Below are positions 29,124 to 37,914 of a stretch of DNA of 64,000 nt, one piece after another (position 1 is the first letter of the stretch; each line of letters begins with the position of its first letter). The position numbers and the translations under genes are program-made. The notes under the pieces are model-generated. The model did no database searches and was not told where the DNA came from. It worked only from the letters and a program-made list of their open reading frames with translations. This stretch comes from Ascidiella aspersa (taxonomy: Eukaryota): the NCBI GenBank assembly GCA_963924565.1, contig OZ004609.1, positions 25,854,001-25,918,000 on the forward strand, read 5' to 3'.

Positions 29124-32100
29124 CTATTTTGCCCCTAACTTGTAAAATGGTCTGCCCGAGATCCACGACTCGTCGTCGCGAAGCGGCCGCGGAGTCGACG
29201 GACTAGCTGACGTCATCGATACCCTGGATGACGTAGGCGACGTGAACGGCGTCAGCTGGCTGGACTTCAACAGAGAAGGCGGGCTTTGTTCCTTGTCTTC
29301 CTCGTTGCCCAACAAGCCCTGGTACTTGTCGAAAATATGCAAGCGCTCTAAAGCCTGGACAGCGTCTCGTTTTTTGCTCTTCTTCGTTTCCGCATCTTGC
29401 TTCTGCTCATCTTCATCTTTCTCCTCGGAGGATGACGAATGGGTCAGGTCCCCGTCGCTCTCGCTTACTTCGATCTCGACCACCTCGTACTCGTCCGGAT
29501 CGTACTCCTCGTCCTCATTCCACTCGATGACGTCATCGCTCTCGCTCGACGTGACGTCATTCGATTTCGCAGCGGAAGATGACCTCAACGATGACGGCGT
29601 CGCCACTTCCGGCGTCCGCGGGAGAGAACGCGTCGGCGTGTGATCTCCGTGCACCTGGGGTGACTTTGGTTGTTCAGTCGGTGGGATGACCAGCTTGGGT
29701 GCAACTCTCGCCCTGTTCGTGTTAACGTCTTTCGCTGGTGCCGGTTCCTCTCTTATGAGCTCCTGCTGCTTTTGGGCCCTTTGCTTTGTGGCGCTCTCCT
29801 GCTCCGCCTCGGATTCGGTGGCCGAGAAGTCGCTCGCTATCGTTTTGCCCTGAACACGATGAAGGTTGTGCACAATCCGAGATCAAAGGAGAGTTTACTG
29901 ACACTGTGTTAAAACTATTCACGTCGAAGTAATAATGATTTTTATCGCACTATTTGATCACTTATGCCGTTGGAGGCAACTTTGAAAACAATCCGTCGAC
30001 AAGAATCTAGAACCACAACATACCTAACTTACCTTTTTTAGGTTTAGCATCGGACTTTCGGTGCGAATTGAGTCCATGAGTTGCGTTCTGAGATCAACTG
30101 GCGGCTTGGCTCGTTTTGCAGTTTTGTGCGGTTTCGGTTGCGTCTGCTAAAAATATATTACACGTCATAGATATATAGCATTGCAATTGAGGGAAAACGT
30201 AAAAGGACATTTTTCAAACGAAAGGGCGTTCGTCTGCATTTTAAATCTTACCTTGCCCGTTTTGTTTTCTCTCTCGGGCTCACCAGTAGCTAAGTTTTGA
30301 AGTCTGTTTGAAAACCAGTTTTCCAGCATATTCAATTCGTTTGGATTCATCTGGCCCAGAATTTTCTGAAACAAAACATCTGTCAAATACGCAAGTAGAT
30401 AGAATGCAAGTTTTATAAAATTTCAAAAGTTTTTTTACTTTTTGTATGAAGCTATTCAATCTGTGGCTGTTCAGAAATGACACATCTTATTGTGTCATAT
30501 CAGTTGTATTTTTGCAGTTCTATTAATCACATTTCTAAGTCAAAGCACAAATGTTTATTCTGACGATCATGGTGTTAATGTGTGCACCTGCAGATCCTTG
30601 TCCTGCACTGATCCGGTTGCATCAAGTAACACGCATTTTTTCTTCATGTTCTCCAATCGCTGGGCTTTTTCTCTTCTGTACCATTCGCTGCTGGTCTGGC
30701 GACGAAGTGTTGGCCTAGTGGGCTAAATATACGCAAATGATTGATTAGTTCATCATGGGAGGCGGCTAAGCTATAACAAAAAAAAATAAACTAGGTGTAC
30801 ATTATAAAACAAAAAATTCTTATATTGGCCCAAAGGATGACTACGAAAATGACTGAGGCTTGACAAGTTAACCTTCATTCAGTGTTGCTCATTTAACCCA
30901 ATTTCGCCTAGTGAGTTAGATACAAAGTTCGTAAATAGTTATAATACCAATGCAAACTGAATATGTGAAAAAGAAGATATCTCCTCGCCCTAATGCACGT
31001 TAATGACGACAATGACTTCGAATGGTAGCAAAACAGTATAGACTTTCTTGTTTCAGTCAAAATCAGTCACTATAGGTTCTAGTTTATAAAAGAGAAATAT
31101 ATTTCGCCAATCACGGCATCATCAGTCTCTAACAAACGAATACAAAATAAAGTAAACACGTAAACCAGGTGGTAGAAATTAAAAGTCATGAATAGTAGAA
31201 ATTTAAAGTCATTTTTTATAACACCAATCAATGATTTTTTGGACTTTCGTTGCAAGGGTAAAGCGATGTCGTTCGCTACTTTTGCATTTTATAACCCCAA
31301 TTCAAACAAACCCCGGGATTTTCAACATACATTCATGCGTTGTTCAGCCAGTCTCTTCTTTCGCACTTGGTCCATGTTTCTGGTCAGAGAGTTAGATGCT
31401 GTCATGCGCAAGCCCGGGTTGGCAAACTGATAGCCGAACCGTAAGATCGTGCTGCGTCACAACAACAAGATTTTAAGCAATCATTACGCAATATTTGAAT
31501 GGAGAATTTCGAACATGCTGGAACAGTGTCTGACATAAATTTTAACAGTTTAATCACTATTTTTACATTATCAAAAATGTTGTCTGTTCGATAACAAAAT
31601 AACATCGTTATAAAAAAAAATTATTTAACTTTGACCTATTCTAATTTGGGCGAATTTTACATAAATTTCATGATATAAGTTTTTCGGGCTCAGCTTAATT
31701 CACTTTGCCCGGTGTTTCAATGGTAATCATAAAAAGTTGTTTAGTAGGCAAGTTAAGGAATACGCAACCGCTATGATTCGAGAGCCCAACATAGAAAATC
31801 ACTTTTCAATGTCGACAATCCCGAAACTGAACATCACGTCATTCGTTGCGGTGAAAGATTTCAAGCAGGCATTTACTCACTGGTTGTCGCGCAGTATCTT
31901 GCCAAACTCGTGCTCGACATTGGCACCGAAGATGTGTCGTTGGTTGTCGATTCTCACTTCGCGAAGGCTCGCGTTTTTTCGCAGAGCAGCGACGATTCGA
32001 AGCGCGCCCCCACCTGCGCAAGTAATTCCAATTAATCCGTGGCATTGCAGTGTAAGGCGGATAACTTGGTCTTTACTTTGGGTAACGAAATTTGAAATCT

Positions 32101-35100
32101 GTTCGAGTCATAGCCGTTACAAACCTTATAAGTTACAACGCTAGATGGTCTTGGGACAACAGGAAAACAGTTTCTCCTTTTTTAATTTATTTTTAGTTGA
32201 ACCAAATCTTTTAAAAACGAAGTATCTTCATACAAAGGCATGCTTGAGTTAAGGTTAAGTTGTTTTCCAACATTGGCAAATGACAAACACTTTTTGTCAA
32301 AAATATATCGAATGCAATAAATAGCCTAAAATTCAATTTGACTTGTTTTGTACCTGAAACAAGTTTTTCCTTTATAATGTGTTTTACATAGATGTTTTTA
32401 TTAATGAAACTATATTTTTAACGCTTTTCGACCTTCATTCGTTTTGCGTAACTATGAACATGACCAGGTTGCTTGCAATGATTTGTTCAAATATTTTCTG
32501 TTTTTTTCGAACACACCTGTTATGAAGTTGGACTCGACGTTCAGGTTTTCCAGCGTCTTGTTTTTCTTGATCATGGAGGCGAGCGCCCGGGCCGCCTTGT
32601 CTGTCAGCCCTGTGTTTGCCAACAGCAACGATTTCACCTGCGTGTTTTCCTCCATCGCGTCTGCCAGCTCCTCGAAGGCTTCCATCGGAACGTTTTGTAT
32701 GTTGTTCAGATTGACCTGATGCAAGACCAAGGTTGTCAAACTGACATCAATATATTTTCAAGTAACGACAAAATTCGCATTTTAATACAATAAAGTAAAT
32801 TTTAATAGGTTAAGCTCTAAGGAACTAAAGTAGTATTTAGCTGTGAATCACATGCCTTAATTCAAAATGATAGAAGCTTTTCAGCAAGATGTAATTCTTA
32901 AGGAGTTTTTATAAGAGATCTTGGTATATAATGCCACACATATGTAGCAGGAAAAACATTAAGGCTTTTTGTTAGTTTACATAATACTTAACGTCTTCAT
33001 AAGTTTTTTGACATACAAATTAACGAGAAGAACTTTCTGTAGAAAAAAACTTGTTCCACTTGCTATAAAAAATAAGCGCAATCTGCTTATTATTAGTTTT
33101 TTTGGGAAGGTGAGTAAAACCTGTAAACAAATGCATTTTAAACATTTGGTGTGTTGGTTGGCTACAAAAAGAACAACCAGTAATATAAAAGAGAAAAATG
33201 TAAAATTCCTGCTATTTGTGATTACATTTCGAAAAGGTTTTGCTGGCGTTTATTTAATTCGTTTGCATGAGTACAACATATGGCCGAATTGTGAAATAAT
33301 AAGCTCATTATCGGCTTGTGCGACATTAAATTAGGTGTTCTTATCGTTATTTGCAATATTTTCAATTGATCAAGTTGTAGTGCAATACATCAAGGTTTGC
33401 ACATGTACCAAAGTTCCAAACGGTTCGCTCAACACTGGGATTAATTATTTACGTTAGCGTTTTCCGCCAGCACTGCGATTCCAGTCCCGTTTGATCGCGC
33501 CAGGCCAGATCCCATGAGAGCGCGTGCGGCCGAAGATCATCGTTAGCGAGCAGCAGCTGAAGCTGTACGAGTCGCTGTAGGCGCCAGCAGACGCGACACG
33601 CTTTATGTCTATTGCTATTTGGACAGGGTGACTGGGTTACGATTCGCTGAAAGTCGGGCCTGTCGTCCGTTTGGGGTCCGGAAGATGCCAAGTGGTGCCG
33701 GCGCACTTGCGCTAGCTGTCAGCGTATCAGTAATATCGCCAGTTGCGCTGCGTGTCATGTGACTGCCAGAAGACTTTATATGGTTTGAACTTACAGCGTG
33801 TTTTCATAAATAAATAGACACGTTTTAAAAACAATTTGAGCCATCCGATACCTAACCTTTTAACTCATAACGTTCCCTCTTCGTTTTAGTTGAACTATAT
33901 AATGTTTGTTAAATAATAATGTGTTTATATGTCAAGCAGCGGGCCGTGCGTCACAACGTCCGTTTTGCGTCGTGACGCAAACACCCGGAGAGACGCAAAG
34001 GCGCGCGCTAACCTGCAGCGAGCAGCTGCCGCCGAAAATAACGGCAATGACGTCACAAAGCAAAGCGCGACCTGATGCGGTTACCTCCGTCAGACTGGGA
34101 TCGTTCTCCCAAATTCGCAGCAGGGTTTCCTCGACGCTGTTCGGGTTGATTGACAGCTCGCCGATGACGTCGTACGAGGACTCGGCGCTTGTGCTACCCG
34201 CCGTCGTCGATGACGTCATCGTCATGACGTCATCCACTGGGTCCTTTGGCGGCGAGCGCTTCAGTTGGCGGTGCAGGTGGTCGTTGGCCTCGGCCACGGC
34301 GCGGTCGACTCGCTGGTCCGAGTTGACGCTGCCCTCGGAGTCCGCGTCCGACTCGTCAACGCAACTCTGCGAGTTACTGAACTCGCTCTCGTCGTCGTTG
34401 TTGTTGGCCGCTGCTTGCTCCTCCTTTCGCTTGACGCCCTCCGTGATGTGCTTGAGGCTTACGCCGTGCAGAACATCTGGCAGTTTTGCTTCACGCGTTT
34501 CCACCTGGCAAGGCGATGTGGATATTTTTTTTAAACTTAAATTTTGATGAAATAAGCTATTGCTGCTAGGCATAATGTATAACCGAGTGTTGCTCATACA
34601 GCAGTATTATAAACAAATTTTTGATATTTCGTCAAGTGCCTTGGTGAAAACGGAAAGTTTGATTCGTGTTAAAATTCTGGTTTTGAATATACCGATAGAA
34701 TGGTGAGTTGGAATATTCGCGTTAACTAGGTATCTGCGTTTTTTAACGTTTACAAATATTTTATTTGCTTGTTTTTTAGATCAACTATTTAAAATTTGTT
34801 CCAACAAACAAAACGATTATCAAAAAAGGCATATCACTGGCAAAAACTTAACTAAACTTAATAATCGTAAACCTGGCTTTTTCTCATAAAAGAGGTTGGT
34901 TCATGGGCGGGTTCCCAGGGGTAAACAATGCTATAGTAAAAAAGTCCTAGACTATACCCAACAGATAATAAGTAATTCTTTCGCTGCAAAAGTTCTAAAA
35001 TTTATCATAAATCACAAAACGAAAAGTAGAATTAAATTTATGAAACTGTTACAAAATACTGCCTATAGTTTTGTGCAAGGTTTATTCATTCTACATTTAA

Positions 35101-37914
35101 CTACAATCTCTACAAAAACAAAAAATATATTTTCTCGATGCTTTTCCGATACAAGCCTGCATAACCTTAGCAACATGGGGCCTTAACTAATTCTACGATA
35201 GACATCATTTTGAAGCGCAATCAAGGCTCATAATAATATATGTTTGTCAGTACTGTTTCATCTTGTGCTTTGCTAGTAATTGCTACAGTGGGATATGACC
35301 TCATTAATGTACTTACCTTTTTTAAACGGGGCCGGAGTGACAACATTTCTTGTGTGATGAAGTTGGAGTTGACAGGCTGGGCGTCCTTCTTGGATTCCTT
35401 GGCGATCTTTTCCTTGTTGCGTCGCTTAAACAAGGCTGAACTGTTTTTCCTTGTGTATCGCCGACTTACTCCACTGCTGTTTGCCCTACACGTTCTCCGT
35501 CTGCGGATTGATACTTTTTTGTTAAGGGATTGGATAAAATTTAAGCGCATAAAGGTTACTGCGCGCATTTTAAGTTTGATGGATAAACTAAACCATAAAA
35601 GAGCATTACGAAAGACATAAAAAAACATAAATTTTTAGAAAATATACATACGAAAGAGTATGGCTAATAAAATTGGATAACCGGCAAAAGGTTTTCTGAA
35701 AATATAAACAAACAATTGGTAAGTTAACAGTTATAATTAACTATAACAGTCATATTTTTTTTAAATGTCACTAATTAATAAGATTCTACAAAGCACGAAA
35801 TTGAACGATAATAATGAGCACATATTAGAAACTACGCGCGCGCAATTATCCCGTGATAGACATGCTGCCTAGAATTTGTTTTTAACGAAAATTGTATCGA
35901 ATCGGAACTGACATTATCCCTAACCAACACTATAGTGGCATTGCAGTGATATGACGTTGGATTCAACCAGCAGATAAATGGGTTGCACAGCATCCAGTTC
36001 GAACTTACTTGGATCGTTGCTTGACGGCGTGCATGAGCTCATTCTTCATTTCGCCTCCATCCTCACTGCCCTGCTTCCTCAGTCGCTCCCGGGAGCTGGT
36101 CTTGCGCAGCGCCGGCACTTTGAAGACGTGATGCTGACTTTTGCCTGGTGAGAAGATTTGTTTTGGTTAGTCTACTTGCCATTTTAGTGCGCCCTGTCGA
36201 GAGAGATAATTCGCACACCCATACTGCCAGGGTGTTGACAAAAATTGCCTCCCTTGGCGGCACCAGCACCTTAAGAGTGCTCGGTTGTCGGACGACTGCT
36301 AGGCCTGCACCAATGCTGACTTACCGCCCTTTACCTAATATGCATTTTGCTATTCATTCGTTTCTCCTAGGTAAGACCACCGTTTGATAAAAAAGAAAAA
36401 ACAAAACTACAGAGTACTAGCAACTTCAATGTGGCAAAGCAGGAATGCTATAGAGGACATGTTCCAAATCAACTAAATTTTTTGATAACAGCTTTGTGAA
36501 ACATATTGTGAACTGTTATTTGATCTTGTCGCATTGTAATTTAACATTACCTTCATTTTAATCGATTGGCTGCTAACCACTAACAAAGTCGAAAAAATAC
36601 CCTAGGTTATCCATCTTACTCTTATCATATTGCTCAAGCACACACTCAACATATCTTAGTTTATTAGTTCAATAATGTCGTAGTGAAAGTTAGTTAAATT
36701 TATTACACAATCATGTTGCTGGAATGGATGACACAGTCTCGAGACGTACCTGTTTTCTTCTTTTGAATGTCGTGCGATGGGCGTCTTTGTTTTGCGAATT
36801 CTGGCACCTTAGGAGTCTGATCTGCCTGATGGGAAGATAAGCGCCTTGATCGATCTCTTGTCTAGCGAACAAAAATTATACAATTAGTCTCATTTGAAAA
36901 GGCATGTCAAACAGCTGATTTCGTCCCTTTAGACCGTTTTAAAACTTTTTGTGATTTTTTAACATTTGTGCTTTTTTAACAATTGTGTTAAACCCCTTTA
37001 AAACAATTGTTAAAAAAGAATAAAAGTCTTACTACCACCAAGCGCTGAGTTGAATTGTTAAACGTATAAACTTTAAAAACAAAATGTTACCCAAGCTAAT
37101 AACTGGCATCATCTTTATTATCCCTGTTCAAATCAAACCACCAATAATATGTTTAGAGTGAGGAAGTCTTTACATTTGTACCGCTTTAAATGGAGTGGTT
37201 AATCGTGGAAACTGTAAAAAAATGTAAAAAATAAACTAGACGGGGATTAGAATAAACCATCGTACCTCCTCAAGATGTTGCGACGGTGTCGTGTCTTGCT
37301 CTTCGCACTCATCATCAGATTCAGATTCTTCACTTTCCGAAGAGGAGGAGTAGTTGTAGCCGTTGGCCGCCTCGGGTTGACCTTCCGGTATCTTGTTTAA
37401 CACCTCCCTGTCGATTTCTCCCTGCATTGATTCAGTAGTAAAAACTTGCTTTAAATTTTATCTTTGACTTTATCAAGCTCTGTTCAATTGTTTTGTTATA
37501 CATAAATTAGATTTAGGCCGTTTTTATTATAGTTACATCAAACTGATTATGAAAAACGATTCAAGGACGCAGTTTACCGATTTTTTATATTATGTTTAAC
37601 AAATGCAGTTTTCTAACTAAATGTTTTCGCCTAATTGTATGCTAGGCAGCCTTAGGTATGGTACGATTGGTGTGGTATTGTCTGACATGTGAGACTACAG
37701 CTATCCAATGTATTTTCACTAATTATTTTTTTTAAACGCAATGAAATGCCACTTTAATTCTGCATTTATATTTTTACAATTGCCACGTGATATGTTCTCA
37801 TACCTCAAGCTGCTCAAGTTCTTCTGCGGTTAGATTGCACAAAATCTCATCTTCGTCAATTTCTCTGTATTTCTCCAGCATATGTCCATAACCATCGCCT
37901 CCGTTTGAAGACAT
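29124..37914 (-). CDS. TMOD: Tropomodulin/leiomodin-family actin pointed-end regulator, about 881 aa (Tmod N-terminus, LRR domain, WH2-like motifs, acidic tail)
   Basis: Phase-consistent exons (5' to 3'): 37914-37804, 37421-37266, 36861-36750, 36144-36009, 35485-35317, 34504-34085, 32715-32517, 32013-31881, 31451-31331, 30722-30588, 30365-30252, 30146-30033 (NAGNAG acceptor), 29849-29124; total 2646 nt. N-terminus LEKYREIDEDEILCNLTAEELEQLE; LRR domain [31 protein letters not shown]...LENLNVESNFITG...VRIDNQ...ILRFGYQFANPGLRMTASNSLTRNMDQVRKKRL; C-terminal WH2-like DLRTQLMDSIRTESPMLNLKK. Confidence 0.9.
30949..31210 (-). mobile_element. Penelope pLTR-like remnant (T-rich segment, hammerhead, 140-nt downstream segment); partial copy at 17849-17978
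   Basis: 30949-31084 (aatgcaaactgaa...tctcctcgccct...aatcagtca...gttctagtt) aligns by eye with 17849-17978 and lies next to the hammerhead at 31093-31130. Confidence 0.5.
31093..31130 (-). ncRNA. Minimal type I hammerhead ribozyme in intron 9 of the Tmod/Lmod-like gene (sense orientation)
   Basis: Minus strand reads agaga-CUGAUGA-U-GCC-gugauu-GGC-GAAA-U-AUA-uuucu: intact core, 3-bp GC stem II, 5-bp stem I with one G-U pair, palindromic AUAU mini stem III. Confidence 0.65.

Follow-up and report, generated by a model that had tools for sequence, protein, structure and literature searches.

Gene structure and transcript

The window (the whole 64-kb stretch of DNA that was analysed) contains a leiomodin-like gene on the minus strand. 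With predicted exons E1-E4 included, the coding sequence is 2661 nt and encodes a protein of 886 aa, not the 881 aa of the original prediction. The 13 exons are named E1-E10, E10b, E11 and E12. L and P numbers denote loci and protein fragments used for comparison. The following features were identified:

29124..37914, minus strand: whole coding sequence (13 exons, 886 aa) of the leiomodin-like gene, ending in stop codon 29126-29124
37804..37914, minus strand: E1, aa 1-37, Pfam PF03250 match; conserved in L009 and L010
37878-37804, minus strand: tropomyosin-binding helix TMBS1 in E1, aa 13-37
37266..37421, minus strand: E2, aa 38-89, acidic Ser-rich insertion; predicted (AG/GT sites, phase 0), partly conserved in L009 and L010
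36750..36861, minus strand: E3, aa 90-126; predicted, keeps the E2-E4 frame
36831-36796, minus strand: remnant of the Tmod RQKDQT..P string in E3 (HQADQTPKVPEF), aa 100-111
36009..36144, minus strand: E4, aa 127-171, conserved H.FK.P.L(R/K) string and ABS1-like helix
36049-36017, minus strand: ABS1-like helix in E4, aa 159-169
35317..35500, minus strand: E5, aa 172-233, basic region, then first half of the pre-LRR block
35487-35437, minus strand: RRxS-type cluster in E5, aa 177-193
35373-35317, minus strand: first half of the block, VNSNF..LRPRLKK, aa 215-233; conserved in L008, L009, L010, L023 and P0016
34430..34504, minus strand: start of E6, second half of the block, V.TRE(A/P)...LHGVSL.HIT.G.K, aa 234-258; RNA joint 35317 to 34504
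34085..34429, minus strand: remainder of E6, with the LRR N-cap from aa 352 (34150) after a variable acidic linker and conserved STTAGSTSAESYDVIGELS
31331..32715, minus strand: E7-E9, aa 374-524, LRR of Tmod/Lmod type (actin-binding site 2) and C-terminal helix; RNA joints
30588..30722, minus strand: E10, aa 525-569, conserved RPTLRRQTSSEWYR string; RNA
30252..30365, minus strand: E10b, aa 570-607, TMBS1-like helix (I/V)L..M.P..L..LE.WF; conserved in L005, L008, L009, L024 and P0113
30033..30146, minus strand: E11, aa 608-645; RNA, orthologues in L005 and L008
30095-30033, minus strand: Lmod-type WH2-like motif in E11, aa 625-645
29124..29849, minus strand: E12, aa 646-886 and stop, acidic tail; conserved in L005, L008 and L024

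A spliced contig of RNA run X3 (2813 nt, depth 160, minus strand, GT..AG at every joint) fixes exons 5-13, i.e., E5-E12 including E10b. It gives E5 at 35500-35317, E6 at 34504-34085, E7 at 32715-32517, E8 at 32013-31881, E9 at 31451-31331, E10 at 30722-30588, the additional exon E10b at 30365-30252 and E11 at 30146-30033, all on the minus strand. Its loose end at 35500 agrees with a 3' end of E4 at donor 36009, and that at 30032 with the start of E12 (29849). The junctions of E1-E4 are predicted from splice sites and reading frame, from relatives that conserve E1, E2 and E4, and from the part of the contig 5' of E5, whose 626 nt equal 515 nt of predicted coding sequence plus 111 nt of UTR. A clear counterpart of E3 was sought in relatives and not identified. 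The exon chain is thus supported by RNA in exons 5-13 and remains a prediction at the E1-E4 junctions. All motifs quoted in the original prediction are present in the sequence, on the minus strand. The exons encoding them are retained in the mature transcript of X3, not skipped, and the motifs are conserved in the orthologous exons of other tunicates. Exon reads were not found in about 6% of the raw reads of a further RNA run (X5), a result that has no bearing on whether the gene is silent. Rfam, at gathering thresholds, identified nothing within the 64-kb window.

Domain organization

The tropomyosin-binding N-terminus expected of a tropomodulin (Tmod) is present. E1 matches Pfam Tropomodulin (PF03250) with 26.6 bits (cut-off 23.3, E 6.4e-6), over profile positions 2-29 only, and the match covers just the first tropomyosin-binding helix. 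No PF03250 alignment past position 29 was obtained for exons 2-6, leaving the span 30-142 of Tmod proper (ABS1, TMBS2) unmatched. The ELK(K/N)EL.QAVK.R string of E4 is conserved in L009, L010 and L023. Its counterpart in the window, MKNELMHAVKQ, had been listed as a weak WH2-type motif; we take it instead to be like the ABS1 helix of Tmod1.

Exon by exon, identity of the LRR exons E7-E9 with their orthologues in L005, L008 and L009 is 75-84%; over the complete LRR domain, identity with L005 is 81%. The predicted LRR actin-binding domain was recovered through orthologues: P0005 matches Lmod2, Lmod1 and Tmod1 ABS2 structures in the PDB (E 1e-44 to 1e-49; 168 bits for its LRR against Lmod2), and precomputed PF27087 matches lie on the orthologous exons of relatives, through which the window LRR was placed. 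Among the matches listed, the closest named relatives are the Ciona savignyi fragments P0005 and P0016, which marks the source genome as that of a tunicate. Homologue searches, one of them with a profile led by a 562-aa fish Lmod, listed no full-length tunicate protein within their length and ranking limits. The intron positions in the LRR differ between the window gene and the canonical Tmod paralogue of the same genome.

Following the LRR is an LL..IR string, seven residues and LKK, a pattern conserved in L005 and L008. E11 splices to the 241-aa exon E12, reading LKK|G, and in the window species the spliced motif is LKKG, not LKKV. A profile of E11 aligned with 76 fish Lmod WH2 segments at P 1.1e-4 (hhalign); a narrow HMM built from those 76 segments gave no match to the window protein and 8.8 bits on L005. 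A PPPQRPPSPP run precedes the WH2-like motif in the L008 orthologue, where the window species has only weak Pro content (KPP). Thus, the WH2-like motif predicted for the C-terminus is present after the LRR and of Lmod type, but it is not terminal, as 241 aa follow. Conserved islands in E12 are IEW..DEEYDPDEYEVVEIEV, LE.LHIFD.Y and the terminal RDD.SWI.G.PFYKLGAK; the tail has no match in Pfam or the Atlas. Overall, the assignment to the Tmod/Lmod family holds, with a leiomodin-like layout (TMBS1 helix, no TMBS2, LRR, and a post-LRR extension with LL..IR...LKK).

A conserved block before the LRR

The apparently new part of this leiomodin-like protein is a conserved block of about 44 residues before the LRR. 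It reads as an amphipathic NF(I/V)T.EML.L, RPKLKKV, TREP, and then LHGVSL.HITSG. An intron splits this thymosin-like string, and the X3 contig joins LKK (E5) to VETREAKLP (E6). Aligned across 10 sequences, the block forms a conserved island flanked by variable linkers. It is conserved across about ten tunicate lineages, its second half in 12 database fragments and 9 loci, and the L(K/R)KV.T(R/K)E(P/A) core is likewise conserved among tunicates. Because it is conserved in the orthologous exons of other tunicates, we conclude that the E5/E6 block is not a chance string. None of the 244 vertebrate Tmod/Lmod proteins compared has such a block, and we found no report of it in the literature.

Like beta-thymosin and WH2 modules (thymosin-beta4, ciboulot-type repeats), the block has an amphipathic stretch followed by a short spacer, L-K-K/H-V/T and x-T-x-E; a further conserved segment lies about as far along as the C-terminal helix does in thymosin. 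Whereas beta-thymosin is a small sequestering peptide, the block is part of a large pointed-end protein; it also fails both Pfam models, and its +4 position, E in thymosins, is variable.

Pfam and PDB searches took one exon at a time, with the natural P0016 fragment of C. savignyi in place of the E5-E6 junction. The Pfam cut-offs are 23.1 bits for WH2 (PF02205) and 24.8 bits for Thymosin (PF01290). No WH2 match was obtained at E up to 10 on E4, E5, E6, E11, surrounding ORFs or P0016, and the window is not among the matches of a genome-wide WH2 scan; in calibration, true fish Lmod WH2s reach only 12-17 bits on this model. Thymosin matches were not identified on the exons or P0016, and the genome-wide Thymosin scan found six true repeats elsewhere (C8:14.649-14.651 Mb and C3:21.973 Mb) and nothing in the window. 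Of the Pfam scans proposed, that for Tropomodulin succeeded on E1, and no motif reaches WH2 or Thymosin; the thymosin-like string is present, spliced and conserved, but fails both models. In profile comparison (hhalign), the block aligned with the thymosin repeats of its own genome at P 0.0048 over 13 columns, whereas bona fide Lmod WH2 gave a weaker P of 0.036 against the same repeats. PDB sequence searches with E5, E11 and P0016 returned no WH2 or thymosin chain. A match of E5 to a designed repeat protein in the PDB was rejected as compositional. ESM Atlas searches with P0016 residues 1-45 and with the E12 tail returned no usable matches.

Structure prediction was run on the same natural fragment. 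The complex of own-genome actin (L011:1489-2619) with P0016 residues 1-48, a peptide that starts six residues into the putative helix, scored 0.03, a value that speaks neither for nor against binding. The AF2 model of P0016 (17 sequences) has a mean pLDDT of 58.6, with the motif region unstructured and the truncated LRR mis-modelled, and is uninformative.

Proposed function of the block

On balance, we favour the view that the protein belongs to a tunicate leiomodin branch and that the added block is most likely a second G-actin site of WH2/beta-thymosin type. [quoted passage not shown] The tunicate lineage would have gained the block, about 44 residues long, after the degenerate ABS1 helix and ahead of the LRR, with the RRxS-type cluster just upstream. 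As a second G-actin site, a role suggested by motif shape and conservation, it would leave the LRR flanked by monomer-binding motifs on both sides. Actin binding by the block is plausible.

A fuller version, which we offer more tentatively, is that the block is a working beta-thymosin/WH2-type module. The protein would then have four actin sites (ABS1 remnant, block, LRR and C-terminal WH2), with monomers delivered from both sides of the LRR, and could represent a natural variant of the Lmod nucleator and pointed-end polymerase, possibly switched by RRxS phosphorylation. The new actin nucleator architecture originally proposed is retained as a hypothesis.

A rather less probable reading accepts a tunicate Lmod in which the block does not bind actin and serves regulation or a different partner as a short linear motif. 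It might be a basic docking site under phospho-regulation, with the RRxS cluster just upstream, a patch for nuclear localisation or membrane binding, or a tropomyosin/nebulin-like contact replacing the lost TMBS2. The missing Pfam WH2 and Thymosin matches anywhere on the block are consistent with this, as are the variability among tunicates of the E of LKKTET and of LKH in the second half (its K is not conserved), the strongly basic character of the block, its position beside the conserved RANSSGIG.SR.Y.R.NSS sites, and the lack of a helix there in the AF2 model of P0016 (pLDDT 56-64). However, the amphipathic stretch followed by three residues and L(K/R)KV.T(R/K)E has the shape of a WH2/thymosin core, own-genome thymosin repeats align better with the block than with a true Lmod WH2, and all other modules of the protein deal with actin or tropomyosin.

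Leiomodin acts in muscle, where it initiates actin filaments and elongates them, and tunicates are the sister group of vertebrates. How leiomodin changed from a pointed-end cap to a nucleator and elongator is an active question (with work on Lmod2 in 2025-2026), and the tunicate protein is the only non-vertebrate Lmod that we found in the literature. If the favoured reading of a second G-actin site is true, the extra monomer-binding motif is a natural experiment on the number and placement of actin-binding sites. Mutants of the LKKV core, of the helix's hydrophobic face and of the RRxS sites would then suggest themselves for work in vitro and in Ciona muscle. Even if actin binding is not its role, the block remains an unannotated motif under strong constraint, in a protein of muscle.

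Relationship to leiomodins and tropomodulins

The same genome also encodes a canonical Tmod (G000:C2:36.10-36.11 Mb) whose N-terminal domain is complete (PF03250 positions 2-132). The window gene is a paralogue of it. In the LRR tree, the own-genome Tmod and vertebrate Tmods form a clade (95/87) with the window protein outside, in a separate tunicate clade (95/99). The best tree joins tunicate Lmod-like proteins and vertebrate Lmods at support 52/10; the alternatives were not rejected (AU p 0.31 and 0.50), and the tree had a single outgroup, on a long branch. The LRR phylogeny suggested for the gene thus sets it outside the Tmod clade and does not separate a vertebrate-Lmod orthologue from an offshoot.

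The Ciona counterpart, KH.C14.251 (KY21.Chr14.610, XM_026837543.1), was described in 2023 and named Lmod because it has a WH2 at the C-terminus and a short run rich in proline (PMC10605842). Because it already carries that name, an invertebrate leiomodin, which the original prediction offered as one reading, is not new. Ciona has this Lmod, expressed in muscle, as well as a canonical Tmod1/2/3/4 gene, and one duplication in Olfactores was proposed; Lmod was left out of the tree and sequence files of that study (PMC10605842). We compared it with the window protein through the paper's description and the C. savignyi fragments. Both are tunicate Tmod-family paralogues; the LKKV/TREP/LHGVSL block, the post-LRR TMBS1-like helix and the long acidic tail go unmentioned in the paper (PMC10605842).

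It is unlikely that the gene is an independent tunicate (or older) Tmod duplicate with WH2-like motifs acquired by convergence, and not a vertebrate-Lmod orthologue. The low support and AU values given above would allow this, and the different LRR intron positions of the paralogue and the long tail after the WH2-like motif, unlike vertebrates, also point that way. Against it, both groups share an unusual WH2 type after the LRR (a spacer of 6-7 residues following LL..IR), the L008 orthologue has a Pro-rich run before the motif, TMBS2 is lost in the tunicate gene and vertebrate Lmods alike, and tunicates and vertebrates are sister groups; a single Olfactores duplication was proposed (PMC10605842).

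A diverged Tmod TMBS2 with the following ILGMHTL remnant, inherited and not added, is a very improbable source of the block: it holds the TMBS2 place between ABS1 and the LRR, where the canonical paralogue reads ..AELTDIAG | ILGMHTLMNTDQFY, and (M/V)LHG(V/I)SL is loosely like ILGMHTL, but only two residues are identical, exon boundaries differ (ILGMHTL opens its exon, LHGVSL lies 11 residues in), TMBS2 is acidic whereas the block is basic, and the Pfam Tropomodulin profile stops aligning at position 29.

With vertebrate Lmod1-3 the window protein has in common the TMBS1 helix, a lost TMBS2, an acidic linker ahead of the LRR, an LRR ABS2, and a post-LRR extension with LL..IR, spacer and LKK. 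Tmod1-4 and the own-genome Tmod share with the window protein TMBS1 and an LRR with C-terminal helix, and the window protein keeps an ABS1 remnant; unlike it, Tmods are about 350 aa long, have TMBS2 and the ILGMHTL string, and are without a post-LRR extension. Vertebrate Lmods end soon after WH2, whereas the window protein continues for 241 residues. Vertebrate Lmod genes have about three exons, compared with 13 in the window gene.

Gene structure and splicing

A single gene lies on the minus strand at window positions 37914-29124, with an exon chain derived from six-frame reading and splice-site inspection. A contig of 2813 nt (depth 160) from sequencing run X3, the kind of which is unrecorded, aligns to the span in blocks whose intervening minus-strand introns have GT..AG ends, and is thus a spliced transcript. 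The existence of the gene is established, as is its splicing from E5 on, and E5-E11 of the predicted chain are fixed by this contig, along with an additional exon, E10b.

Exons carried by the X3 spliced contig (window coordinates)
35500-35317, minus strand, E5
34504-34085, minus strand, E6
32715-32517, minus strand, E7
32013-31881, minus strand, E8
31451-31331, minus strand, E9
30722-30588, minus strand, E10
30365-30252, minus strand, E10b (additional exon)
30146-30033, minus strand, E11

The loose ends of the contig agree with the 3' end of E4 and with a start of E12 at 29849. E1-E4 are a prediction based on splice sites and phase; including them, the coding sequence is 2661 nt and encodes 886 aa, rather than the 881 aa of the original prediction. 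The contig carries 626 nt 5' of E5, a length that fits predicted E1-E4 (515 nt) together with a leader of 111 nt. The RNA joins LKK (E5) directly to VETREAKLP (E6), thus the mature message contains the proposed thymosin-like string. Splicing connects E11 to the last exon, of 241 aa (E12; the junction reads LKK, then G), so the WH2-like motif predicted after the LRR is present but internal, not C-terminal.

Both LKK exons stop right before a GT donor (30033 for E11, 35317 for E5), so intron read-through would also give LKKV. The E11 read-through is LKKVS-stop, like the ending of vertebrate C-terminal WH2s, and LKK directly before GT, with read-through to LKKV, also occurs at the E5 donor of three orthologous loci (L008, L009 and L010). 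Only the spliced form was found in the X3 contigs, with no sign of intron retention at these donors. Very high copy intronic repeats occur at ~30950-31190 and ~34520-34620, where summed DNA-contig depth reaches ~54,000 vs ~54 in the flanks; matches of RNA run X5 within the span are confined to these repeats. An Rfam scan of the entire window at gathering thresholds identified no family.

Relationship to tropomodulins and leiomodins

The predicted Tmod N-terminus was recovered in part: E1 clears the Pfam Tropomodulin cut-off, but the alignment is limited to profile positions 2-29, which correspond to the first tropomyosin-binding helix, and no match to the rest of the domain was found downstream. 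The HQADQT remnant in E3 has no clear counterpart among relatives. With E6 as query, a HMMER search across 1.84 billion representative proteins returned just 12 fragments, all short and exon-sized. One, P0005, is a Ciona savignyi protein, and a second C. savignyi fragment, P0016, crosses the E5-E6 junction; because of this origin, we place the host genome (308.6 Mb, 75 contigs) in a tunicate other than C. savignyi. PDB entries matching P0005 are the actin-binding LRRs of Lmod2, Lmod1 and Tmod1 (E 1e-44 to 1e-49), Lmod ranking marginally higher. A canonical tropomodulin with a full N-terminal domain, the tropomyosin-binding site TMBS2 and an ILGMHTL string is encoded on a different contig of the same genome. 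The leiomodin-like gene is its paralogue, and its family is established.

The LRR tree has 23 rows (5 tunicate Lmod-like sequences, 7 vertebrate Lmods, 9 vertebrate Tmods, the own-genome Tmod and 1 beetle Tmod), and is without the remaining fetched Tmod/Lmod proteins, Lmod1 or a non-insect invertebrate Tmod. The own-genome Tmod clusters with vertebrate Tmods (95/87), and vertebrate Lmods form a separate clade (95/96). The tunicate Lmod-like sequences form another (95/99), apart from the Tmods, but their grouping with vertebrate Lmods has support of 52/10, and the two alternative orders have AU p of 0.31 and 0.50, so the tree supports no single branching order among these three clades. Such a tree is compatible with the entire gene being an independent Tmod duplicate, a rival to be set against the Lmod-like motif of E11.

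Ciona gene KH.C14.251 was named 'Lmod' for a C-terminal WH2 and short Pro-rich region in its product, and is expressed in tail muscle; the same study proposes that Tmod and Lmod arose by duplication in an ancestor shared by tunicates and vertebrates, and its tree and sequence files do not include Lmod (PMC10605842, 2023). The literature searched gives no other leiomodin-tunicate link. Thus, an 'invertebrate leiomodin' is already catalogued, if only thinly. The finding itself is real, and is not a new nucleator class.

Candidate actin-binding motifs

The E11 motif resembles vertebrate Lmod WH2s in its long spacer from LL..IR to LKK, and its profile matches that of 76 fish Lmod WH2 segments (P 1.1e-4). 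It is kept in the orthologous loci L005 and L008, in the latter behind a PPPQRPPSPP run. By analogy with vertebrate Lmods, the protein would act at thin-filament pointed ends, where the E11 motif may recruit an actin monomer. The MKNELMHAVKQ string, listed originally as a weak motif, is conserved in relatives. In position and pattern it looks like the ABS1 helix of Tmod.

Public assemblies yielded the orthologous loci of nine further lineages, and the exons were located in these. Before the LRR lies a single unbroken conserved island of ~44 residues, reading VN.NF(I/V)T.(E/Q)(M/I)L.LRP(K/R)L(K/R)K in E5 and V.T(R/K)E(P/A)..(V/L)..(M/V)LHG(V/I)SL.H(I/V)T.G.K in E6, with a basic, RRxS-rich stretch ahead of it and a variable acidic linker behind. 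The E5 half is present in 6 sequences and the E6 half in 10 aligned sequences and 12/12 database fragments. None of 244 vertebrate and insect Tmod/Lmod proteins compared carries the block. Conservation of this block and of the E11 motif in other tunicates is established.

The shape of the block (an amphipathic stretch, a 3-residue spacer, LKKV, then x-T-x-E) argues for a WH2/thymosin-like element, and a second conserved segment follows, spaced roughly as the C-terminal helix is in thymosins. Compared with own-genome thymosin repeats it gives P 0.0048 over 13 columns, vs only 0.036 for genuine Lmod WH2. No exon or ORF, nor the joined P0016, gave a Pfam WH2 or Thymosin match, genome-wide scans with both found none in the window, and PDB sequence searches matched no WH2 or thymosin chain. 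True fish Lmod WH2s are likewise under the Pfam WH2 threshold, so this failure counts against membership more than function. We tentatively suggest, somewhat short of an even chance and with less confidence than for E11, that the block is a putative second monomer-binding site, perhaps regulated via the adjacent RRxS cluster. Alternatively, it may be a docking or regulatory motif unrelated to actin, in line with the Pfam results and less so with the thymosin comparison. Less probably, it may be a diverged remnant of TMBS2/ILGMHTL, which the canonical paralogue retains. The block is no copy of the E11 motif (P 0.076).

Other features

Conserved basic RRxS/RKNSS-type clusters at 35437-35487 (E5; RANSSGIG.SR.Y.R.NSS, directly before the block) and 30680-30722 (E10; RPTLRRQTSSEWYR, directly after the LRR) flank the actin-binding parts and look like AGC/CaM-kinase phosphorylation sites. 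The RNA-supported E10b (30252-30365) encodes a helix, (I/V)L..M.P..L..LE.WF, like the N-terminal tropomyosin-binding helix and kept in L005, L008, L009, L024 and the database fragment P0113. E12 (29124-29849) encodes an acidic tail of 241 aa after the WH2-like motif, unlike vertebrate Lmods, which have nothing comparable. The tail has no match in Pfam or Atlas. Three islands within it are conserved: IEW..DEEYDPDEYEVVEIEV, LE.LHIFD.Y and, at its end, RDD.SWI.G.PFYKLGAK.

The genome (G000) also encodes multi-repeat beta-thymosins with LKHVET-type cores (four repeats at G000:C8:14649368-14651245, two at G000:C3:21972926-21973276). At least eight intronless actin genes, their reading frames open over the full length, are arranged in tandem at G000:C7:22148952-22244521 (L011-L015, L017-L019), where L011:1489-2619 encodes a 377-aa actin.
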